Shown here: piece by piece, positions 9,232 to 56,523 of the stretch
Layout: the number at the start of each line of letters is the position of its first letter
Numbering within the stretch: position 1 is the first letter of the stretch
Origin: Anaeramoeba ignava BMAN
Lineage: Eukaryota; Protista; Anaeramoebae
Length of the DNA: 64,000 nucleotides
Assembly (NCBI GenBank): GCA_028826165.1
Contig: JAPDFW010000141.1
Span: 1 to 64,000, forward strand
Reading direction: 5' to 3'
Notes under the pieces: generated by a model
Database searches by the model: none
What the model was told of the DNA's origin: nothing
The model's input: only the letters and a program-made list of their open reading frames with translations
Program-made: the position numbers and the translations under genes

Positions 9232-12200
9232 ATGAATAAATCACGTTTTAGACTTATTAGAGCAACATTAAAAAAAATAAAACCACCAAAAACAGCACAA
9301 CCAACAAGAAAAAAAGAAGAAAAAAAAGATCAAAAAAAACAAACATGCAGAAAAAAACATAAAAAAACATTAATTCTTCAAAAAGCAAAACCAAAACCAA
9401 AATCAAGAAAATCACGTAAAAGAAAAAGTGAAGCACCAATATTAATTGAAGATTCAAAAAAAGATTCAAAAAAAGATTCAAAAAAAGATTCAAAAAAAGA
9501 TTCAAAAAAAGATTCTAAAAAAGATTCAAAAAAAGATTCTAAAAAAGATTCTAAAAAAGATTCAAAAAAAGATTTAACACAAAATTTAACACAAGATTTA
9601 ACACAAAATTTAACACAAGATTTAACACAAAATTTAACACAAGATTTAACAAAAGATTTAACACAAAATTTAACACAAGATTTAACACAAGATTTAACAA
9701 AAGATTTAACACAAAATTTAACACAAGATTTAACAAAAGATTTAACACAAGATTTAAAAAAAGATTTAACACAAAACTTAACAAAAGATTTAACAAAAGA
9801 TTTAACACAAGATTTAACACAAGATTTAACACAAGATTTAACACAAAATTTAACAAAAGATTTAACAAAAGATTTAACAAAAGATTTAACACAAAACTTA
9901 ACAAAAGATTTAACACAAAATTTAACACAAGATTTAACAAAAGATTTAACAAAAGATTTAACACAAAATTTAACACAAAATTTAACACAAGATTTAAAAA
10001 ATGATTTAACAAAAGATTTAACAAAAGATTTAACACAAAATTTAACACAAAATTTAAAAAATGATTCAAAAAATGATTCAAAAAATGATTCAAAAAATGA
10101 TTCAAAAAATGATTTGAAAAAGATTTGGAAATTGATTCAAAAAATGATTCGAAAATTGATTTGGAAATTGATTTAAAAAATGATTCCCAAATTTTGGAAC
10201 CAAATCCTAAAATTCCAAGAGTACGTAAAACCAGTGAAAAACCTGCAAAAGTATTCTTACGAATTCGACCATTTGCAAAATCAAACCCAGAACAACTTGA
10301 AATTTTTGCAGAAAGTAAAACAATTCAAGTAATCGATCCAACACACAGAAACGCAACATCAAAATTCTCGTTCAATCACGTATTTCGAGCCAGAAACACC
10401 ACAAGAAACAGTATTTGAAACATCAACACTTCCATTGATTCGATCAATAATAACAAGTCCACTTTCTCGATATGCAATGGTTTTTGCCTTTGGAATAAGT
10501 AATGCTGGCAAAACTTTCACAATACAAGGAAACTCAGAATCACCAGGAATTCTTCCAAGATCAATAAGCACTGTTATGAACTCAATAAACAAGATACAAA
10601 ATCCAGAACAATTTCAAGATCCAAAAAATTCCTCTTTGGATCATATTATTGAGATAAATGAATCTTTTTATTACGAAGTCTCAGTATCTTGTTTTGAGAT
10701 TTACAACGATAAAATATTCGATCTCCTCTCTGAACAAAACGGCTCTTAAAAAAGTACATTCACGTGCAATTTCTCTACAGATCAAGGAGAACCATTTGGG
10801 ACAAATTGTGATACCTGAACTAACCGAGACGCAGATAACAAGTGTTGAGGAAGCAGAAAAACTGATCCAAACAGCAAGACAAAACCAGCATATTCACAGC
10901 ACAGCAATTCATAGCGATTCCAACAGATCTCACTCTGTTTTCCAGATGAAAATCATTCGAGTTCCGCGCGATCCAAAAACGGGCGCAAAAATCCTCGACA
11001 TCGACTCAGTCACTTGCTCGTATCTCTCAATAGTAGACCTTGCTGGTTCCGAGCGCATCAGCAACGCGCAAACAACAGGACAACAACTTAAAGAGACAAC
11101 GAATATAAACTTGTCCATCATGGTTCTGCGCAGATGTATTGATGTGATGTGCAAAAATCAAACACTTAAAAATAAACTTGTTATTCCTTATCGAGAAAGT
11201 GTTCTTACTCGGATATTCAAGGATTATTTCCAGAGTAACTCCACAATATCAATGATTGTTTGTGTCGACCAAAACGCAAATAATTATTACGAGACAATCC
11301 ATACACTCAAACTCTCAGCTACAACTCAACAACTTGTTATTCCTCAAACTGCAGAAATTTCTCACTTCCAAAAAAACTCAAATTTTCACCAAAAACAACA
11401 TCCTTTCAACTTAATGGATAATTCTCCTCTCAAAAGTTTGCGGATGAAAAAATTAAACAAAAGCAACAAAAAAAACGATTTTTTCTCCAAACAAACCTTA
11501 TCAAACATCCGCAGCGATCCCAACCATTCTAATGATCTCAACGACTCAAATGATTTCATCAATGATTCGGACACTTCTCTTCAAATGGCAACTATTGTCG
11601 AATCTATCCAAAAGCAAATCGACCAGATCAAATTCCAGCTCCAATCAAACGAACTCAAAACCGTCCAAATTGAAACAAAAGTGCGCAACGAAGTTTCAAA
11701 TGAAATGGAAAATCATCTCAAAAAAATTGAGAGTTTGTATCAATCTCAATATCAAACACAAAGTATGATTTTACAAGAAAGATTTGATCGCAAGTTTGAG
11801 ATTTTGAACAAGAAATTCGAAAAACTACTTTCTTCAACTTTCCAAATGCAAAATCAAAATCAAAATCAAAATCAAAATCAAAATCAAAATCAAAATGAAA
11901 TTGAAATTGAAAATCAAAATGAAAATCAAAATGAATCCTTTTTGGATGTTGATGATCTTATCTATCAAAATAATCCAAGAGAAATTTCTCAAGTTGATGA
12001 AAACGAACTTTCTCTTCTCAAAACAAGATTTGATGACTTGATGGAAGAGTACACTCAACTTCAAGAGGAAATGAACACATACAAATTTTCTCTTTCTCAA
12101 AAAGATGATGAAATTTCTGAACTCCAAAAATTACTAAGTGAAAAAACAAAAGAAAACGAACAACTCCAATTACAAATTCAACAATTATCTGAGTATAAAG

Positions 12201-13600
12201 AGTTGTATTCAAATCAAAAAATTAGAATGGATCGAATGGAAAAATTTTATCAAAGATTGCAATTCTCAGCTCGAAAATTATATTTCGAAGCAAAAAAGAA
12301 GGAAGATGTTTTACCAAGTATTCTATTATTGAAGAATACTATTGATAATTATGAAACAAGTTTAGAAAGTGATTTTGAAGATGATGAAATGAAAGAAGAA
12401 GATAACAAAATGAAAGAAGAAGAAAACAAAATGAAAGAAGAAGAAACAAAATGAAAGAAGAAGAAAATGAACAAAATAAAATTTCAGAAATTAATCTTAA
12501 AATTGATACCAACATGAAAGATCAAGAAATTTCAATCCAACAAGAAAACACACAACAAAAAATTTCCATTCTTTCTAATCCAATTCAAAATTCTCAAAAA
12601 ACTCCAAAAACTCCAAGAACTCCAAGAACTCCTAAAACTCCCAAATATTTAACTCCATTTTTACCAAATTCAAGTTCTTCTTTTAAAGATTTAGGAGATG
12701 ATCAATTTTCTGAATCTGATTTTTTCTCACTTGGAGCAACTCCAATTTCCCAAAGCAATCAAAAACAAAGCAATCAAAAAATCCTTAATCAAAGCAATCA
12801 AAAACAAAGCAATCAAAAAATTCTTAATCAAAGCAATCAAAAACAAAGCAATCAAAAAATTCTTAATCAAAGCAATCAAAAACAAAGCAATCAAAAAATT
12901 CTTAATCAAAGCAATCAAAAACAAATTAATGAAAATATTTCAAGAGAAAGTATCGATTCTAAAGATATAGATCTTGGTTTAGCTGATGAAGATTTCACAC
13001 AAACTGATATCGATAAAGATCTTTTCCAAGATTTAGAACAAAAAACTCCTATTTATCAATCTCCTTATGTTCAAACAAAATCTGCAGATTATCATTCTGA
13101 AAATGAACAAGAAAATACTCCAATTAAACAAGAAAATGAAACAACAAAAACAACCGAATCAAAAAATCCTCCAAATTCAAATACTATTAAAATTATTCAT
13201 AAAAATAAAAATAAATCCAAAAATAAAAAAAATAAAAATAAAGACAAAAAATCTAAAAACAAGAAAAGAAAATCAAAATCTTCTTATCATTCTTCTACTT
13301 CAAGTTATTCAACTGATAATGAAGATTCTGGAGATGATGATTATAAAGTTAGTCCACAAAAGAAAAAGAGAAACAAAAAAACTAAGAAAAGTAACAAAAA
13401 TAACAAAAAAACAAGAAATTCTAAAAATACAAGAAATACAAGAAACAGTAAAAAAGAAAAAGAAAAAGAAAAAGAAAAAGAAAAATTTAAGAAAAAAAAG
13501 CAAAAATAATAAACAAAAAAAACCTCCAAAAACAAGAAAACTTCGTGGTATTTCTAAACGAAATGAAGGTTATGATTATCTTGATCAAGATTCTGATTAA
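9232..13600 (+). CDS. Kinesin motor protein, probably kinesin-6 (KIF20/MKLP-like), with a repetitive N-terminus and coiled-coil tail (several frameshifts)
   Basis: KVFLRIRP, FSFNHVF, P-loop FGISNAGKTFTIQG, FEIYNDKIFDLL, switch I SNRSHSVF, switch II VDLAGSER and IPYRESVLT. The subfamily call is inference from the P-loop and switch region. Confidence 0.88.
9450..10120 (+). repeat. Coding 12-nt tandem repeats (KKDS, then DLTQ/NLTQ/DLTK, then KNDS) in the kinesin N-terminus
   Basis: gattcaaaaaaa and gatttaacacaa / aatttaacacaa units are visible directly. Confidence 0.9.
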
Positions 13601-13687: not shown

Positions 13688-16600
13688 TTAAAATTTTCTT
13701 CTTGTTGTTGTTCTTGTTTTTGTTGTTCTTGTTGTTGTTTTCTTTCTTTCTTCTATTCTTTTTTCATCAAATAATTCTTGAAAAAATAATATTCTGGAAT
13801 TTGGATGAAGTTGATAATAATCATTAAAAAAATCAAAATCAAAATCTTGAGAATCTTTTTCAACTAAATCTCGATATTCTTTTTCATCCATTTGATCTGT
13901 ATAAAGAAATTTAATAAAGAAATTCATTGCTTCAAATGATTTTTCAGTAAAATCTTTAGTTCTATTAGAATCATCTTTTATCAAAATGAAAGTTTGTCGA
14001 AATAAATTACTTCTAGCTGCAAGAACTAATTTATGAGCTTTAATTTGTTTTCCTTCAACTTCAATTATAAAATCTTTTTGATTTTCATTTAAATTTTCAT
14101 TTAAATTTTCATTTGAATTTTCATTTTGGATTTTATTTTCTTTTTCATCATCATCATCATAATAATAAAGTTTCCCAATATCTTCTTTCAAATCTCTCAT
14201 TGCAATATTATTTATTCCACATTCCTTTAAAATATCTTTAGTTTTCTTGTTTTCTTCTTTTTCTTCTTTTTCTTTTTTTTCTTTTTTTCCCTTTAATTCT
14301 CCTTTATAAATCCAAGTTAAAACATTTTTAATCTCATTATCTGTATATTTCATTAAAATTTTTTCAATTTCTTCTGCTTTTTTTCCTGTTCTTGCTTCAA
14401 TAATCAATTTATGAACTCCAAAAGTTGAAATTTCAAAATCTACCAATTGTTTTTCGATAAACAAATTATGGAAATCGTCTTTAAATGAACTATGTGTACT
14501 GCTTAATATTTTCAATTCTTCATTCTTACTCTTTGTCCCATAATCAAGAAATTGTCCTTTATTAAAAATTTCATCAAAAATTTTAAATTTTTCATTCTTT
14601 GTTAAATTGTTATGACTTTCTATATCGCTCAAATTTTTTTCAATCTTTTTCAATTAATTTTATTTTAAAAATATAAATATATATATATAAATGTATATAA
14701 TTTAGAATTTGTTTTCTTATAAAATTCACTTACTAAATAAATTTAAATTAAAAATTAAAAATTCATTTTAAAATTAAAATTAAAATTAAAATTAAAATTA
14801 AAAATACCCATTGTTCCTCCATTTTTTAATATTAGTACAATCATCTCAAGTGTTACAGATTCATTTTGAAGAAGATAAGATAATGGTGTATACTATAAAA
14901 ATAATGAAAAATCATAATTTATTTATTTTTTTATCAATATCATTTCAAATTTATTCAATCAAAAGAAAAAAAAATAATTTACTTTCTAAAAAAAAAAGGA
15001 ATATTTGAATTATTATTATTAATTTTAATTTATCAAATCTTAATTTACATACTATAGTTGTTGTTGTTGTTGTTGTTTTAGAAAAAACAAAATTTATTTT
15101 TCAAATTTAATTCAATTTCTTTAAATTACATGCTAATTTTATTCAAAAATTAATTCTTTTTCCATTTTGTATTTTAAAAAAAAATATTTATGATTATTCA
15201 CAGCCTAAATTTTAAATCAAAACTTTTAATCCACATTTTTTCTTTCTTTTTTTTCTTTCTTAATTACAGTAAATTTTTTCAAATTAGCTCCATTAACTAT
15301 CATTAATTCAAGAGATTCAATTGTAATTGCTGGATTTTGACATAAATAATGAAGTGGAGTATACTTTTTTTTTATAAAAAAAATAAAAATAATTATTATT
15401 AATGATTTATATTTGAATTATTAAATTGTTTTACAAACTATTTATTTTATTTCAAATATAAAAATATATTATATTATATTAATTCAAAATCAATCTTATT
15501 TTTATTTTTTACATCCTAAAAAAAAATTTTAATTAATTTGAAATGAAAAGGAAAAAAAAAGATATACAGAAAATGCATTAATATTAGCATTGTTTTGAAG
15601 AAGAATAGCAATCATTTCGGGTTTTAAACTTTTGTTATAACATAGATAATGCAATGGTGTAATCTTATGTAAAAAAAAAAGATGATTTAATTTTTATATA
15701 ATTTTCTTTTTCAAAGAAATTTATTTTAAATTATTTTTTGAAGAAATACAACCTATTCAATAAAATATTAATAAAATAATAAATTCCACTTTTTCCTCTT
15801 TTGTTTTTAGAATATATTTACATACTATTTTATTAATTTAGTTAAAATCCCAAAAAAAATAATAAGAAGAATAATAGAATTTTTTTTTACATGAGAATCT
15901 TTCGCACGAATTCCATATTTAATTAATAATTTAAGCATTTCAATAGTTATTGATGGATTTCGACATAAATAATGAAGTACTGAACACTAATTTTTTTTTT
16001 TAATTATTATAAAAAATTTAATTTTGTTTTTTATTATATTTACTCCCTATTTTTTTTCTTATTTAAATACTTTTGAAGGAAATTACTATTAAAATTAAAA
16101 TTATACTTCCTAAAAAATTCATTTATTAAAAAAAAAACTATTTTTAAAATTTTTTTTCAAAACAAAATGATATAAATAATTTACAGCCTATATTATATTA
16201 TATTTTATTTAATATTTTTTTTTAAGAAAATAACTGATTTGAAATGATTTCCAAAAAAATTTATTTACAGTTCTTAATTTCAAATTAACTCTATATTTAA
16301 TTAGAGTTTCTATCATTTCTAATTTTAAAGCTGGGTTTTGGAAAAGAAGTGAACATGATGTATTCTAAAATTATTAAAAATTAATATTTGAATTATCTCT
16401 AATAACAAAATAATTTACTAAATCCTAAAAAAAAATAATTGATAGATAAATAATTATTTTTATTTTAATTTTTAATTTTTCTTACATTCTAAAATTGGTT
16501 TTTTTTTTCCAAAATTAATACTTTTATTTAAATAAAAAGAAAATTACAAGCTTTATTAAAGTTTAAATTTTTTAATTTTTGAAAATTTTTGAAAATTTTG

Positions 16601-18728
16601 AAAATTTTTAGAATTTTACAATCTAGAAAGGAAAAATGAAAAAGGAAAACAATTCATATTTATTATAATTAAATTTTCTCAAATTCAATCAATAAATACA
16701 TTTTGAATATCAAATTTATATTTTTTTTCTAACATCATAACGATAATATTGTTAGTAACCAAAGGATTTGAACAAATTAAATCAATTCCAGAAATCTAAT
16801 TTTAAATTCTCAGTTAATTTCCTTATTTTTTAAAAACTTTTTAAAAGAATTTTTTTTTATTATTATTGTTTACAGCCTAAATATGAAAAAAATTAAATTT
16901 CTTCAAAAGCAAAAAAATTGTTTTATTCTTCTTTTTCTTACTTTCTAAAAAAAAATGTAAAACTATTTATAAGAAAATTTTGGAATAAATTTTGTTTTAA
17001 ATTTTACAGTCTAATTAATTTATTAATATAATTATTTATTGAAATTTAATAATAATAATTATTATTATTACTCCCTAAAGATATAATATTAATATTTAAC
17101 AAAAAAAAAACAAAATGAATTTTTTTGTTTTACATATTTCGCATTAAAATCTAATCCTGAATCTAATAAAAGTTTAATAATATCTTCACTAATAGAATGA
17201 CTACATAATAAATGAAAAGGTGTAATCTAAAGGAAAAATTTTTGTTATTTTTATTATTAAAAAAAATTAAATGAAATAATTTTTGGTCTTTACATTCTAA
17301 AATTAAGAGAAAAAATTTGTTTATTTGGATTATTGTTATTTTATATTTAACAAAAATTACTCTCTTTTTATTTTTATAATTCCAAAAAAATTTTATTAAA
17401 AAAATTTCATATCAATTTAAAAATGGAATTACAAGCTTTTTATAAGAAAAAAACATTAAATTAATAAATAATTTTTTTTGGAATGATTATAAAAAGAAAT
17501 TTAATAAATTACTCCCTTTTATATTTATTAATTTTATTATTAATTTTATTATAAATTTTATTATTAATTTTATTATTAATTTTATTATTAATTTTATTAT
17601 TAATTTTATTATTAATTTTATTATTAATTTTATTATTAATTTTATTATAAATTTTATTATTAATTTTATTATAAATTTTATTATAAATTTTATTATTAAT
17701 TTTATTATAAATTTTATTATAAATTTTTACAAAAGGAATCATAAAATCAGCTTTATATTTTATTGCTAAATCTATTAATTGTAAAGTTAAATTTTTGTTT
17801 TGGCATAATTGGTAAAATGGAGTTGACTTATTTATAAACAAAAAAATGAAATGTAAATAAAAATGTTTTTTATAAACATTTTGTTAAAATTAAATTAAAA
17901 TTACTTTCTTTTAAAGAGAAATTAAAATTAATAATAACAAAATTTCTTTTAAATTTTACTCTCTAATTAAAAATTATTTTTATATCAAATTCTTTTCACT
18001 TTTCTTCTTTTCTTTTCTTTGGAAATTTTACTGGCTTTAAAATTTATAAAAATTTATTAAAATTAAAATTAAATTTTAAATTAAAATTATTTTAAAAATA
18101 ATTACAGTTTTATGATTAAAATTTGCCCCTTTTTCAAGAAGAAAATTTGTTAATTCAAATGTAATATTAGGATTTTTTGCTAAATAATATAAAGGTGACA
18201 TTTCCTAATTTAAAAATTTTTTTTGTAAATTTTTTCTTTGTGAATTTTTTGAATTGTAATTTTTTGATTTACATTCTAAATTTAAAATTTAAAATTTAAA
18301 AAAATTTTTTTTCTTAAATTTTTCTCTTTACATTTGGCACTTTTAAATTTTCAATTCTTTTAAAAACCAATTCAATCATTTCTTTATTAACAGATTCATT
18401 TTTACAAATAGAACATAAAGCAGATCTTAAATTCTATAAAAGTAATTTAAAAAATATAATAAAATTAATTAACAAAAAAAAAAACGAAAATTAAAAAATT
18501 AATTTTTTCACAATCTAAAAAAAATTTAATTTTGTTTTGAATTATTTTTTCCAATTTTAAATTTTGATATTTCTTTAATTTTTAATTTCAAACTGATTCA
18601 TATGAATTTTTTTGAATAGAAGAGATTATTTGCTCAATAATTTTTAAATCTGAAGAATTTTGAAGAGTTTTAAAATCATCAAGAGTTATATCTTTATCTT
18701 TAATAGGAAATTGAGGAAATTGAAGCAT
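13688..18728 (-). CDS. Ankyrin-repeat + BTB/POZ protein, ~41 exons including ~29 microexons
   Basis: Exon 1 is 18728-18594 (MLQFPQFP...). Ankyrin exons are 18433-18332, 18204-18106, 17826-17731, 17226-17134, 16795-16700, 16364-16269, 15986-15891, 15663-15568, 15363-15268 and 14892-14808, giving SPLYY/TPFYQ/TPFHL/SVLHY/TPLHY/TPLSY...LL.xGA.xN motifs. The last exon runs from about 14619 to 13688 and carries BTB (DFIIEVEGKQIKAHKLVLAARSNLF...FFIKFLYTD). All junctions are GT-AG. The junction into the last exon is the least certain. Confidence 0.88.
14730..18514 (-). other. Array of single-codon microexons (AG|NNN|GT)
   Basis: 18514-12 ATT; 18275-73 AAT; 18034-32 CCA, 17962-60 AGA, 17907-05 AAA; 17515-13 GGA, 17435-33 CTT, 17363-61 AGA, 17296-94 AAT; 17074-72 GGA, 17010-08 ACT, 16944-42 AAA, 16876-74 GCT; 16622-20 ATT, 16550-48 CTT, 16488-86 AAT, 16424-19 GATTTA; 16187-85 GCT, 16109-07 GAA, 16046-44 GGA; 15824-22 TAT, 15752-50 GTT; 15515-13 GAT, 15437-35 TTT; 15204-02 GCT, 15132-30 CAT, 15051-49 TAT, 14985-83 AAA; 14732-30 TAA (phase 1). 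Confidence 0.85.
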
Positions 18729-18873: not shown

Positions 18874-19770
18874 ATGAATTCAAACAGAAAAAAATCACAA
18901 CTTTATGAAATTTTTTGGCAAACAAATTGGAAAATTCCTAACACAAATTTAACATTATTAGGACATTCAAAAGCAGCAGAAAAAACAGGATTTATAATTC
19001 CACAATTAGGAATATTTCTTGATGCAGGAATTCAAGGATATCACGAACCACATTACATTTTCATAACACATTGTCACAGCGATCATACATTTGGATTACC
19101 GATGCTTTTAACGGGAATTCAGTCCAATCCAAAAATTTATGTCCCTAATGGAACTGAAGATTTATACACAAATTTTATCAAAAGCACGTTTGAATTATCA
19201 ACAGGAGGAAAAGATATTGATTTATCGTTTTTCAAGATTTTGGGAGTTAGTCCAAAAGACAGTTTTGCATTTTCTGCAAAAACAAGAAAATTTGAAATAC
19301 AAGTTTTCCAGTGTGATCATACAGTGCCAACTGTTGGTTATGGATTTAGTGAAAAAACAACCAAGTTGAAGACTGAATATCATGGGTTGTCCGGCAAGAA
19401 AATCAAAGAAATGAGAGAGAATAAGGAGGATATTTTCATTGAAAAAATCAATAAGTTTCTTTGTTATCTTGGTGATACAACTCCTCTTGTTTTTGAACTT
19501 AATCCAGAAATCTTGCAATATTCAACAATCATAATTGAATGCACTTTTCTCAGTCAAGAAAACCAAAAAAATGCTGCTGAAAGAAAGCATATTTGTTGGA
19601 ATGATTTGCTTCCTTATGTTGCCAAGAATCCAAATGTTACCTTTGTTTTGATTCATTTTAGTTTTAGAAGTTCTGATGAAGAAATTCTTGAATTTTTTGA
19701 GAAGGAAAAAAAGGCGAATGATTTAAAAAATTTAATAGTTTGGTTAGATTATCAAACTGAGATTAAATAG
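18874..19770 (+). CDS. Short-form tRNase Z (metallo-beta-lactamase fold), intronless
   Basis: FLDAG, FITHCHSDH (HxHxDH), HTVPTVGY, KLKTEY.GL.G..I (TM-type arm), YLGDT, IIECTF, RKHI and LIHFSFR. Confidence 0.88.
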   Translation: MNSNRKKSQLYEIFWQTNWKIPNTNLTLLGHSKAAEKTGFIIPQLGIFLDAGIQGYHEPHYIFITHCHSDHTFGLPMLLTGIQSNPKIYVPNGTEDLYTNFIKSTFELSTGGKDIDLSFFKILGVSPKDSFAFSAKTRKFEIQVFQCDHTVPTVGYGFSEKTTKLKTEYHGLSGKKIKEMRENKEDIFIEKINKFLCYLGDTTPLVFELNPEILQYSTIIIECTFLSQENQKNAAERKHICWNDLLPYVAKNPNVTFVLIHFSFRSSDEEILEFFEKEKKANDLKNLIVWLDYQTEIK

Positions 19771-52143: not shown

Positions 52144-55100
52144 TTAACAACATCCTTTTCTTCCAGTTGATTTTGGTAAAGATGGTCGAATTTTTTGATT
52201 TGAATTTTGATTTTTTTGTTGATCATCAGTTATATTTTTTGGAATTTTTTTACCTTTTTTTTTAATAGATTTTTAAAATAGATTTTGAAATAGATTTTTA
52301 AATAGATTTTTAAATAAATTTTAAAATAAATTTTGAAATAGATTTTTAAATAGATTTTTAAATAAATTTTTAAATAAATTTTTAAATAAATTTTTAAATA
52401 AATTTTGAAACAGATTTTGAAATAGATTTTGAAATAGATTTTAAGATAGATTTTTAAATAAATTTTTAAATAAATTTTTAAATTAAATAGTCTGGAATAT
52501 TTACCAACTTGGTAAAATAATTCATCAATAAATTCTCCAGTTTTTGCTGAAGTTTCAATAAAAATAAGATTATTTTCAGTTGCAAAATCTTGTCCAACTT
52601 GAGATTTAACTTGTCGTTTTTCTGATAAATCTAGTTTATTACCAACAAGTGCAATAACTAACAAGTTGCAAAATAACTTTAAATAGATTTTAAAATAGTT
52701 CAGGTTTTGCTTTTTCTTTCATTTCGTTTATCCATTTTTTAGCAATTTCAAAAGAACCCTAAATATTTGGAATTGATTTGGAATTGATTTGGAATTAAAT
52801 ATTTATTTGATTTAAATATTATTTTATTTAAATATCTTTTTGATTTAAATATTATTTGATTTAAATATTATTTTTTGATTTAAATATTTTTGATTTAAAT
52901 ATTATTTTGATTTAAATATTATTTTTTGATTTAAATATTATTTTGATTTAAATATTATTTAATTTAAATATTATTTAATTTAAATATTTGGAATTGATTT
53001 GGAATTAAATATTATTTTATTTAAATATCTTTTTAATTTAAATATTTTTAATTTAAATATTTTTGATTTAAAATATTTTTGATTTAAAATAAAATTTATT
53101 TTAAATTTAAATATTATTTTGATTTAAATATTATTTTGAAATATTATTGATTTAAAAAGTCAGGATTTGTTCGAATTTCGGGATTTTGCCGAATTCTTCT
53201 TTTTTCTTGCCCCTTTCAATAAAAAAAATTGCAAATCTTTAATTAATTTTCAATTTCTGCTTTTTCGATTCCCGAAAGGGGAACAATTTTTTTTTCAACC
53301 ATCAAATTTTTTAAATGTGTTTTAAAAGAAAAAACTGGACACATTAAAAAAGTGGAACAAAAAAACCGAATTTTTTTAGATGTTTTTTTCGGTTTATTTT
53401 GAATCAAAAATCATTTTTTTTTGAAAAAAAAAAGTTCACCTTTCGAGAAAATCCCGAAAAAAAAGAAAAAAGGAAAACAAAAACCTTCTCATTCAAAAGA
53501 GGAAAATGAAAATGAAAATCAAAATCAAAATCAAAATCAAAATCAAAATGAAAATGAAATTCATTTGATTTGGGAATTCTGGGAGAAATACTCTTGAAAT
53601 TTTTTGATTAATGGTCCTTTCCTTAAAGTACTAGTGTTATGAATTTTTCTCTTTTTCATTTCCGTGCGAATTTCTTTCATATGCTTACTCCAAATTTCTC
53701 CCTTGACAATCTCTTCCCAAGGATCGTTTTTTCCAACTATGAAGCTAGTTTGAATTAAATCCTCTTTTTTATTGTACTCCAATTTTCCCTTCATATTTTG
53801 TTTCAGATTGTTTTCTTGATTGAAGATCTTTTTTTCTTCTTCTTTTTCAGTTGAATTCAAAACAATACCTTTTTCAAGACCATTTTCTTTTGGGGAAAGT
53901 TCGATTTTAGGTTTAATCGGAAAGTTCAAAAATGAGCAAATTTGGTTATTTTCTGGATCAGATTTCACCTTTTCAGAATTTGTTTTCTCTAAATCTTTTT
54001 TCTGGATATTTTCATTTTGATTGTTATTATTATTATTATTAGTATTATCGTTATTCTGGTTATCGATTTCTAAATGAAAAAACTGTTTTTCTTCTTGTGT
54101 AAGAATTCCTAAATGAGGAGATTCCTTTTGATTTGTTTCTTGAGAATTTGTGAGTATCAATTGAGAGTTTTCGATCTTTGTTTGATTCATTCTTTGGTTT
54201 TCTTCTTTCTTAATTTGTGAAGAGAAATGTGATATTTGGACCTTTCCTTGATTTATATCCAAGGAATCATTGGAAGAAAATGGTATCTCGATCTTTCTTT
54301 TTCGCTGTTTCTTTGATTTTTTCTTATTGTTATTTTTAGGTTTTTCTGCTGTTAGATTTTCCTTTCTCTTATTATTAATTTCCGTTCGAAAATGTTCATC
54401 CTCCTTTCTTAATAATTCCACCATTTGAAAAAGATCTGGTTTTGTATGATGACATTCGTCGTTTAATCGACGGTTATATCTTTCTAAAGAACAATTTGTT
54501 CTTTTCACAAATTCAGGATCATCAAAATTGGACCATAGAAAAGGAGGAAAGAGTTTGATCCAGGTTCTTTCAAAATAGTCAAAAAAATCTTCATAGTTGG
54601 GGAACTCTTGTTGAAGTTCTGCTATTTTTGTTGGAATTTGATCATGAGGAACCAAACAAAGATCATCAATTCTCTCTAAAAGAGCTGAAGAAGTATCTTT
54701 ATCCTTGAGCTGAAATTTTTTCATCTTTTCTAATCTTTTGACCAGGGCCTGTTTAAAGTGGAAATAGCAACCCTTCAAAATTTGTGGTTGAAAAACTGCC
54801 TTGATACTACTTTGAAGAGATTTCTCAAAATCACACATAAAGCATTGAGGTTTCCATCTTTGCTGAAAAAGCGATTGAATGATCCGAAAAGCTGCAGTAT
54901 ATAATGTGTGAATTTTATTAGTTAAAGCACAATACACAACAGGAACAAAGGAATTGGTTTCAGCATCGACTGTCATGAAGATTACAATTTGTTGAAAAGG
55001 TTTAGCGGCACTTAAGAATGTCCCATCCACAAATACTTGTTGATTTTGATATAGAATTTTTGCTAATTCATCTGAAAACCAAATCATAATCTTTTCCTCT

Positions 55101-56523
55101 TTTTCGCATTGGATATTTATAGAACATCGCAAAAATGTTGACTTATTTAACGTGCGAGAATAAGGATCCTTTTGAATCAGTTGGATTGCATCTTCCGTCG
55201 AATTATTTTTTCTGATCTCTCGAATTCGGTAGAAGCAAAGCTTTTGATTGGGAATCTGAACAACATTGTTATTGTTTTTAGCCCATTCTTCACTTGTTTC
55301 CTTAGCAATTTTGAAAATTTTACTTGGTTGAGTTTTGGTTTCAGCAAGATTTTCAACTGTTTCCCAGAAAGGTCCTGGACCAGATCGATTTTTACTTAAT
55401 TCTTGACATTCTTTCGAATGATTCTGACCGCCATATGGAACTCCATTCTTCCATCTCATAGTACCCCGACATTTAGGATCGGAGCAGGTGAAATATATTG
55501 TATCATTGGTTTGTTTATTGTGATGGTAATAAAATCCTGCATGAAAATAACGACCTTTGTTTTGTTTCATCTGAGATAATTGTTTGAAAAAAAAAAAATA
55601 AAAATAAAATTAAAAAAATGTTCGTTTTCGGTTTTTCGAATTTTAATTTCCCCTTTCTTGTTTATTTTTAACGACTAACAATAAAAAAAATTTCTCCTTT
55701 CGGGAATTTTCCGAATTCGGCAAAATCCCGAAATTCGAACAAATCCTGACCATACCATATTATTTTGATTTAAATATTTTTTTGGATTTAAATATTTGGA
55801 ATTGATTTGGAATTAAATATTTTTTTGAATTAAATATTATTTTTTGATTTAGATATTTTTTTGGTTTAAATATTATTTTGATTTAAATATTATTTTGATT
55901 TAAAAATGGGCTTAAATATCTACTTCATTTGTTATATCATAAACAACAAGAGCAGCAACTGCATCTCGATAATACATAGGAGTAATACTCCAAAATCTTT
56001 CTTGACCTGCTGTATCATAAATAATAAATTTTATTTCTTCATCTTCAATTTGAACAATTTTTTCCAAATTATGAACTAAATTTTACATTCATTTTAAATT
56101 AAAATTAAAATTAAAATTATAATTATAATTAAAATTAAAATTATAATTAATATTAAAATTAAAATTAATATTTAAATTACAATTAAAATTAAAATTATAA
56201 TTAATATTAAAATTATAATTAATATTAAAATTAAAATTATAATTAATATTAAAATTACAATTAAAATTAAAATTATAATTAATATTAAAATTAAAATTAG
56301 AATCAAAATTAAAATTAAAATTAAAATTATAATTAAAATTAAAATTAAAATCAATATTAAAATTAAAATCAATATTAAAATTAAAATTAAAATTAAAATT
56401 ACCTCCAATAGTAGGGAATTGATATTGAAAAAATTCATCATTTGCAAAACGAAATGTTACAGATGTTTTTCCTACTCCAGAATCTCCAAGTAAAACCAAT
56501 TTATGTGATTTTGTAAAAGACAT
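52144..56523 (-). CDS. Rab5-family small GTPase; exons about 56523-56403, 56075-55924, 52758-~52698, 52657-52505 and 52253-52144; intron 2 carries a MULE
   Basis: [28 protein letters not shown]...[14 protein letters not shown]|[29 protein letters not shown] and C-terminal GCC. The exon 3/4 junction lacks a GT donor. Confidence 0.85.
53159..55756 (-). mobile_element. Mutator-like (MULE) DNA transposon with 38-bp perfect terminal inverted repeats
   Basis: gtcaggatttgttcgaatttcgggattttgccgaattc (53159-53196) is the exact reverse complement of 55713-55750; subterminal TTTCGGGA/TCCCGAAA motifs; GC content steps up relative to the flanking intron. Confidence 0.92.
53561..55570 (-). CDS. MULE transposase (FLYWCH-like zinc finger + DDE catalytic domain), 669 aa, intact
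   Basis: [11 protein letters not shown]...NH; FVDGTF; FMCDFE; GCYFHFKQA (CxxH); FFDYFERTW; [10 protein letters not shown]. Confidence 0.93.
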   Translation of the reverse strand: MKQNKGRYFHAGFYYHHNKQTNDTIYFTCSDPKCRGTMRWKNGVPYGGQNHSKECQELSKNRSGPGPFWETVENLAETKTQPSKIFKIAKETSEEWAKNNNNVVQIPNQKLCFYRIREIRKNNSTEDAIQLIQKDPYSRTLNKSTFLRCSINIQCEKEEKIMIWFSDELAKILYQNQQVFVDGTFLSAAKPFQQIVIFMTVDAETNSFVPVVYCALTNKIHTLYTAAFRIIQSLFQQRWKPQCFMCDFEKSLQSSIKAVFQPQILKGCYFHFKQALVKRLEKMKKFQLKDKDTSSALLERIDDLCLVPHDQIPTKIAELQQEFPNYEDFFDYFERTWIKLFPPFLWSNFDDPEFVKRTNCSLERYNRRLNDECHHTKPDLFQMVELLRKEDEHFRTEINNKRKENLTAEKPKNNNKKKSKKQRKRKIEIPFSSNDSLDINQGKVQISHFSSQIKKEENQRMNQTKIENSQLILTNSQETNQKESPHLGILTQEEKQFFHLEIDNQNNDNTNNNNNNNQNENIQKKDLEKTNSEKVKSDPENNQICSFLNFPIKPKIELSPKENGLEKGIVLNSTEKEEEKKIFNQENNLKQNMKGKLEYNKKEDLIQTSFIVGKNDPWEEIVKGEIWSKHMKEIRTEMKKRKIHNTSTLRKGPLIKKFQEYFSQNSQIK

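Follow-up and report, generated by a model that had tools for sequence, protein, structure and literature searches.

Results

The ankyrin-BTB gene and its microexons

The stretch of DNA analysed here (the window) comprises the first 64,000 nt of contig JAPDFW010000141.1 in the Anaeramoeba ignava BMAN assembly GCA_028826165.1. On its minus strand, from 18728 to 13688, lies a gene for an ankyrin-BTB protein in which large exons, one for each ankyrin repeat, alternate with clusters of exons that are mostly a single codon long (Table 1). An initial annotation of the window had described this gene as hidden and had placed it at 14730-18728. The gene in fact extends to 13688 and is already in GenBank as KAJ5066504.1 (652 aa): a homology search with the last exon returned a 652-aa protein with 99% identity, which is this entry. 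Residue for residue, KAJ5066504.1 equals the eleven larger exons joined to the last exon from 14556, with every microexon omitted. Thus the gene has been annotated and its microexons have not.

The ten ankyrin exons of the initial annotation were recovered as ten repeat-sized exons, but a larger N-terminal exon stands beside them, giving 11 large exons upstream of the BTB exon. Each repeat-sized exon is 93-102 nt long and in phase 0, that is, one symmetric exon per repeat. Between them, 27 exons of 3 nt and a single 6-nt exon, grouped as 1, 1, 3, 4, 4, 4, 3, 2, 2 and 4, were found at all the minus-strand positions claimed for them, and on recomputation the GT-AG introns measured 52-90 nt, with one repeat-expanded intron of 215 nt, as described. 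The phase-0 triplets include no stop codon, and every one ends in A or T. The prediction that splicing in all microexons leaves the frame uninterrupted also held: the 40-exon model, taken with the last exon as annotated, is 2046 nt long and encodes 681 aa with zero internal stops. The first microexon (18514-18512), which has the weakest donors, is the least certain of the 28. The annotated intron before the BTB exon is 251 nt, far larger than the usual 51-100 nt; a possible alternative join uses the triplet 14732-14730, in phase 1, together with an acceptor at 14619, dividing the intron into 75 and 110 nt.

Both expected domains scored above their Pfam cut-offs (Ank_2 in P0001, 66.8 bits vs. 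27.3; BTB/POZ, 44.4 bits vs. 20.5), and the N-terminus of KAJ5066504.1 contains no hydrophobic stretch, as judged by inspection only. We take the product to be, probably, a Cullin-3 substrate adaptor with the microexon residues at the tips of its binding loops, the inter-repeat loops being the binding loops of ankyrin proteins in general. As a protein its content is ordinary; the novelty lies in the gene structure.

Table 1. Exons and one expanded intron of the ankyrin-BTB gene, in the direction of transcription (window coordinates)
Feature	Position	Strand	Remarks
Exon 1, start codon and N-terminal cap, 135 nt	18594..18728	-	KAJ5066504.1 residues 1-45
3-nt microexon Ile	18512..18514	-	AG-NNN-GT site; weak donors on both introns
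Degenerate ankyrin exon, 102 nt	18332..18433	-	in KAJ5066504.1
3-nt microexon Asn	18273..18275	-	AG-NNN-GT site
Ankyrin exon, 99 nt	18106..18204	-	in KAJ5066504.1
Three 3-nt exons: P 18034-32, R 17962-60, K 17907-05	17905..18034	-	loop length 12
Ankyrin exon, 96 nt	17731..17826	-	in KAJ5066504.1
215-nt intron	17516..17730		grown by AT-only tandem repeat
Four 3-nt exons: G 17515-13, L 17435-33, R 17363-61, N 17296-94	17294..17515	-	loop length 13
Ankyrin exon, 93 nt	17134..17226	-	in KAJ5066504.1
Four 3-nt exons: G 17074-72, T 17010-08, K 16944-42, A 16876-74	16874..17074	-	loop length 13
Ankyrin exon, 96 nt	16700..16795	-	in KAJ5066504.1
3-nt exons I 16622-20, L 16550-48, N 16488-86 and 6-nt exon DL 16424-19	16419..16622	-	loop length 14
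Ankyrin exon, 96 nt	16269..16364	-	in KAJ5066504.1
Three 3-nt exons: A 16187-85, E 16109-07, G 16046-44	16044..16187	-	loop length 12; contributes conserved Gly
Ankyrin exon, 96 nt	15891..15986	-	in KAJ5066504.1
Two 3-nt exons: Y 15824-22, V 15752-50	15750..15824	-	loop length 11
Ankyrin exon, 96 nt	15568..15663	-	in KAJ5066504.1; Pfam
Two 3-nt exons: D 15515-13, F 15437-35	15435..15515	-	loop length 11
Ankyrin exon, 96 nt	15268..15363	-	in KAJ5066504.1
Four 3-nt exons: A 15204-02, H 15132-30, Y 15051-49, K 14985-83	14983..15204	-	loop length 13
Last ankyrin exon, 85 nt, phase-1 end	14808..14892	-	in KAJ5066504.1
Possible phase-1 triplet exon	14730..14732	-	requires acceptor at 14619
Last exon, BTB/POZ domain	13688..14556	-	annotation, Pfam; annotated acceptor 14556, open frame to about 14650

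Enrichment and composition of the AG-NNN-GT sites

As dense an occurrence of AG-NNN-GT in shuffled sequence, which the initial annotation had named as counting against its exons, was not found: the minus strand of 14850-18500 contains 26 such sites compared to 3.1 ± 1.7 in 500 dinucleotide shuffles (maximum 10). The plus strand of the same region contains 0, and the other spacings from 0 to 15 on the minus strand gave 0-4 sites each. The genome scan for runs of these sites that had been proposed was run on the A. ignava genome (42.8 Mb, 147 contigs), where a chain of three AG-NNN-GT sites matched 415 times. A reversed-pattern control gave a count of 186, inflated by coding repeats, and a 4-nt pattern was used as control instead; chains of 4-nt sites were confined to five places genome-wide, all of them tandem repeats, either simple or coding. 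The same ankyrin gene layout was seen in 10 of 20 loci sampled from the genome, and the triplets are present in three independent assemblies. The layout is genome-wide, and the window gene is one of many ankyrin genes so built.

For statistics over several genes we combined the window gene with nine sampled ankyrin genes and considered the gaps between large exons. These ten genes contain 187 sites at spacing 3, against 4-13 at each other spacing, and their introns have a median of 69 nt. Not one of the 187 triplets is a stop codon, where about 18 were expected at the intron rate of 9.4% (P about 1e-8). The G+C content by codon position was 0.40/0.21/0.03 in the triplets and 0.39/0.29/0.10 in the large exons, compared to 0.10 in the introns. 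Preferred codons were used 166 times in the microexons (159 expected), no more strongly than in the large exons. Recursive splice sites, that is, zero-length exons, were considered separately and do not fit the data, as AG-GT sites at spacing 0 were not enriched (4 vs. 187 at spacing 3).

Loop length and position

Loop length was defined as the distance in residues that separates the G of GADVN from the T of TPLH, with each large exon anchored separately. In uninterrupted ankyrin repeats, both of bacteria and of Anaeramoeba, this distance is mostly 12. The large exons alone supply 8-11 residues and yield a length of 12 at 0 of 48 junctions; with the microexons the length is exactly 12 at 35 of the 48, the remainder being mostly longer, and several loops reach 13-19 residues when all microexons are included. 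More microexons are found where the downstream exon gives fewer residues (rho = -0.67, P = 3e-7, an optimistic value since the junctions are related), and 26 of the 32 junctions with ten exon-borne residues carry two. The first intron lies eight residues past the G of GADVN in all 48 well-anchored junctions, and the microexon residues sit at the beta-turn after the GADVNA motif. In the window gene the eight typical loops measure 12, 13, 13, 14, 12, 11, 11 and 13 with microexons and 9 each without.

Two related ankyrin genes (L035 and L039) share one very long loop with 10 and 8 microexons, respectively, that encode differing residues. Many annotated A. ignava ankyrin proteins (P0002, P0003, P0021, P0052, P0062, P0096 and others) have loops of 9-10 residues instead of 12. 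Such loops in an annotated protein are a quick signature of missed microexons.

Transcript-derived proteins of paralogues

Proteins derived from transcripts were EukProt predictions from the A. ignava transcriptome, reached via protein clusters. P0170 equals the genome model P0144 except for two additional residues at each of four loops (QE, KV, YM and MF), and P0169 contains KT where the genome model P0059 has none. The additional residues were turned into genomic patterns (AG-codon-GT, intron, AG-codon-GT, intron, next exon), for which controls gave 0 matches. The QE, YM and MF patterns matched once each in the 42.8 Mb, at C93:694555, 695282 and 695628, on one strand and in order, just upstream of a BTB exon at 696133; the YM pattern had no match at first and matched after the intron range was widened. 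The KT pattern had a single match, at C66:114154-114303, directly before the BTB exon at 114314. Because the extra residues map to unique consecutive triplets, consecutive pairs of single-codon exons are present in spliced A. ignava mRNA. Both transcript-derived proteins include the residues at every comparable loop, an assembly showing the main isoform only, and no isoform with skipped microexons was seen among the transcript-derived proteins compared. The microexons of the window gene are very probably included in its own mRNA as well. One sequencing run of unknown kind contained 0.27 of the gene's words (0.31 expected from exons alone), a value that GC-biased DNA would match, and it was not counted as evidence.

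With these transcripts and the results below from A. flamelloides, the claim that the triplets are real single-codon exons was supported by stop depletion, codon-like composition, restored and compensated loop length, the layout of the second species and the transcript-derived proteins of paralogues.

P0169 also lacks one whole ankyrin repeat of its model P0059 (C66, about 113-114.7 kb) and has extra N-terminal repeats. This mismatch may reflect whole-repeat skipping, a neighbouring gene, or an error of annotation or assembly. AlphaFold predictions on a paralogue gave a mean confidence (predicted local distance difference test) of 97.3 for the included and 97.1 for the skipped form.

The layout in A. 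flamelloides

A. flamelloides shares an average protein identity of 37% with A. ignava and has very different intron sizes. Its annotated short-loop ankyrin proteins show the same intron position and triplets: E and N fill the deficit in P0070 and F that in P0014, both giving a loop of 12, and other genes have longer runs. Spacing 3 is again specific (48 sites vs. 3-9 at other spacings). Neighbouring sites lie ~103 nt apart, and the plain introns of the P0070 gene are 103 and 107 nt long. Two A. flamelloides strains agree at 41 of 42 triplets, a comparison that says nothing on constraint because the introns are also about 97% identical. The sole difference (L057:14648 vs. L058) is non-synonymous, Ser/Tyr.

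Arrays in other gene families

At least three unrelated protein contexts have the layout at a loop. BTB coiled-coil genes contain about 30-36 phase-0 triplets, with introns that are 89-94% identical and triplets that vary. In the BTB-TLDc genes L032-L034 (C1:942-943 kb and 1057-1073 kb), a single loop of the TLDc domain holds 7 to 30 phase-1 triplets. Four tandem TLDc paralogues, with a flanking exon that is 98-99% identical, carry 15, 16, 25 and 30 triplets. These phase-1 arrays encode stop-free loops rich in D, Y and F, and their low-GC position is the middle base, as would be expected of a shifted wobble position.

The BTB coiled-coil arrays lie at L031 (C1:409-413 kb), L048 (C57:593-598 kb) and L045-L047, with intron identities of 89% and 94%. 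Relatives of these arrays near contig ends have a short run of the P-P-K-E-E-P type ahead of ankyrin exons. Intron-free ankyrin open reading frames (ORFs) of 450-2000 aa are also numerous genome-wide and provide a natural control set.

Elsewhere in the window, an ORF with a metallo-beta-lactamase fold (Lactamase_B_2; 18874-19770, plus strand), which we read as RNase Z-like, lies head to head with the ankyrin-BTB gene, 145 nt from its start codon. A kinesin motor ORF is found at 10658-12454 (plus strand) and a MULE transposase ORF at 53561-55570 (minus strand).

Discussion

On balance, we favor the reading that the triplets are mainly constitutive exons, spliced intron by intron, with loop length changing codon by codon over evolution. 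They would be real spliceosomal exons that are normally included, and the main mRNA would encode an ankyrin-BTB protein of about 681 aa. Each repeat exon (93-102 nt) would end eight residues past the G of GADVN, after which 1-5 single-codon exons (in paralogues up to 10) would form the tip of the hairpin loop. An exon of 3 nt is too small for two spliceosomes at once. Splicing would probably proceed by intron definition, with the short AT-rich introns removed one after another, so that no 3-nt exon need be recognised alone and a triplet would always be joined to longer RNA on one side during stepwise intron removal. As to origin, a single phase-0 intron at the loop may have been present in the Anaeramoeba ancestor, with subsequent tandem duplication or loss, both of units made of an intron plus a codon and of whole repeats. 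Such gains and losses would let binding loops grow or shrink by one codon over evolution, with no frameshift.

Several observations weigh against this reading. The initial annotation had claimed that three microexons restore canonical repeat spacing; the cluster A-E-G does supply the conserved Gly, but in the window gene only 2 of the 8 typical loops have the canonical length of 12, the rest being 11, 13 or 14. A duplication origin is not visible in this gene, as the similarity among its introns does not exceed that of shuffles (0.58 vs. 0.61); the introns have diverged to background, and its arrays are therefore old. The genome also contains many intron-free ankyrin arrays, showing that the layout is not required. 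No transcript-derived protein of the window gene appeared among the homologue searches, and the KV pair of P0170 was unmatched by two patterns (introns 45-78 nt). The latter is probably due to introns beyond the allowed range, since the ~300 nt left at the KV position fit longer introns. AlphaFold does not discriminate the included from the skipped form, giving an equal fold for both. Lastly, an adaptive role for the layout is a conjecture.

A different account, which we consider possible but unlikely, is that the single-codon arrays are a splicing-based generator of diversity, editing the loops of ankyrin-BTB, TLDc and other BTB proteins residue by residue and providing a unicellular eukaryote with a repertoire of intracellular ubiquitin-ligase adaptors. 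By combinatorial skipping, subsets of microexons would let one gene produce a whole set of ankyrin-BTB adaptors that differ at their loop tips (e.g. for symbiont, parasite or virus proteins), as in Schistosoma micro-exon genes (MEGs) or Dscam. All 28 exons are in phase 0 and stop-free, which would keep any subset in frame, and they lie at the loop tip, the variable part of ankyrin binders. Several loops are over-long with every microexon included, other families have arrays of 15-36 triplets, seemingly more than a fixed loop would take, the skipped form of a paralogue folds in silico, and one transcript (P0169) is without a whole repeat of its gene model. However, most loops hold exactly the number of microexons that gives canonical length, as in the 26 of 32 ten-residue junctions with two, and neither transcript-derived protein, each representing a main isoform, has dropped residues at a comparable loop.

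That the triplets are included but of no use to the cell is rather improbable. Introns would have multiplied at a loop that tolerates insertions and deletions, and would be kept only since an intron-defining spliceosome removes short introns well. The intron-free ankyrin genes of the same genome and the ready duplication of intron-plus-codon units fit such neutrality, and a single ancestral intron position spread by repeat duplication would account for the pattern. Against it, the layout has been kept in two species as distant as A. ignava and A. flamelloides despite their different intron sizes, and it recurs at a loop in the three or more unrelated contexts described above.

It is highly improbable that the triplets are non-coding, being skipped or serving as intermediate (recursive-like) splice points with the mRNA as annotated. 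The direct joins between large exons in the public model are indeed in frame, and the skipped form folds in silico. Such an account is nevertheless at odds with the stop depletion and codon-like composition, the shift of wobble to the middle base in phase-1 arrays, the compensation of loop length, the residues in transcript proteins and the lack of enrichment of zero-length sites; moreover, standard aligners are known to miss exons of this kind (PMC8831610). Chance in a region of about 85% AT, or an assembly artefact, has a practically negligible probability: shuffles reached at most 10 sites against 26, 4-nt chains occurred at five repeat places against 415 matches for 3 nt, the layout recurs in three independent assemblies, and residues of transcript-derived proteins matched single-codon sites in the genome.

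Among known systems, the MEGs of Schistosoma have exons of 6-81 nt, mostly 15, introns of 0.1-5 kb, secreted products with signal peptides, and isoforms made by alternative splicing (PMC10526429). Like them, the Anaeramoeba genes have very short exons in series, most of them divisible by three in length, that are overlooked by automatic annotation and could be skipped in frame. Unlike them, the exons are 3 nt and the introns 52-90 nt, the encoded residues fill out a loop within a folded ankyrin domain, and there is no homology. By analogy, the layout would work most like Schistosoma MEGs, but its exon and intron sizes fall outside theirs. Microexons of plants and animals (≤15 nt, between GT-AG introns) are conserved and often unannotated; exons of 1 nt have been validated, and two adjacent microexons (5 and 12 nt) reported (PMC8831610). 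The Anaeramoeba exons share the size limit and the GT-AG introns on both sides. Plant and animal genes have one or two microexons, whereas the window gene has 27 of a single codon, as many as 4 in a row, and places them identically in each repeat; a run in one paralogue encodes 10 residues, and other families reach about 30 exons.

In the ROCO LRR and NB-ARC-TPR receptors of Ectocarpus, a large family of repeat-domain binders, each repeat is encoded by one symmetric exon (PMC3341825). The Anaeramoeba repeats likewise have their own symmetric exons. In Ectocarpus it is entire repeat exons that vary, whereas in Anaeramoeba the inter-repeat loop is further split into single codons. Other ankyrin-BTB proteins (Pfam PF12796/PF00023 with PF00651) have the same domain content and form a large family in Anaeramoeba. 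In designed ankyrin repeat proteins (DARPins), the two residues after the Asp past the GADVNA motif are randomised binding positions. DARPin libraries (PMC8683736) are alike in this beta-turn position; the analogy is an engineered one only and does not imply a repertoire within one gene. The initial annotation knew of no described gene with single-codon exons at such density, and a literature search that covered few subscription papers found no paper that links microexons with Anaeramoeba or describes runs of single-codon exons. The layout is an extreme new form of micro-exon gene, of which very short exons and one exon per repeat were already known singly.

If skipping does vary, these arrays would diversify receptors at single-residue resolution. 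Even if fully constitutive, they represent an extreme gene architecture, with 27 three-base exons in a gene, across a gene family and two species. They offer a natural system for the limits of exon size and density, for the order of intron removal, and for protein change by duplication of an intron plus a codon. The public models of many Anaeramoeba ankyrin genes are without their loop residues, and other protists may have this layout too, concealed by the same weakness of aligners and gene finders.

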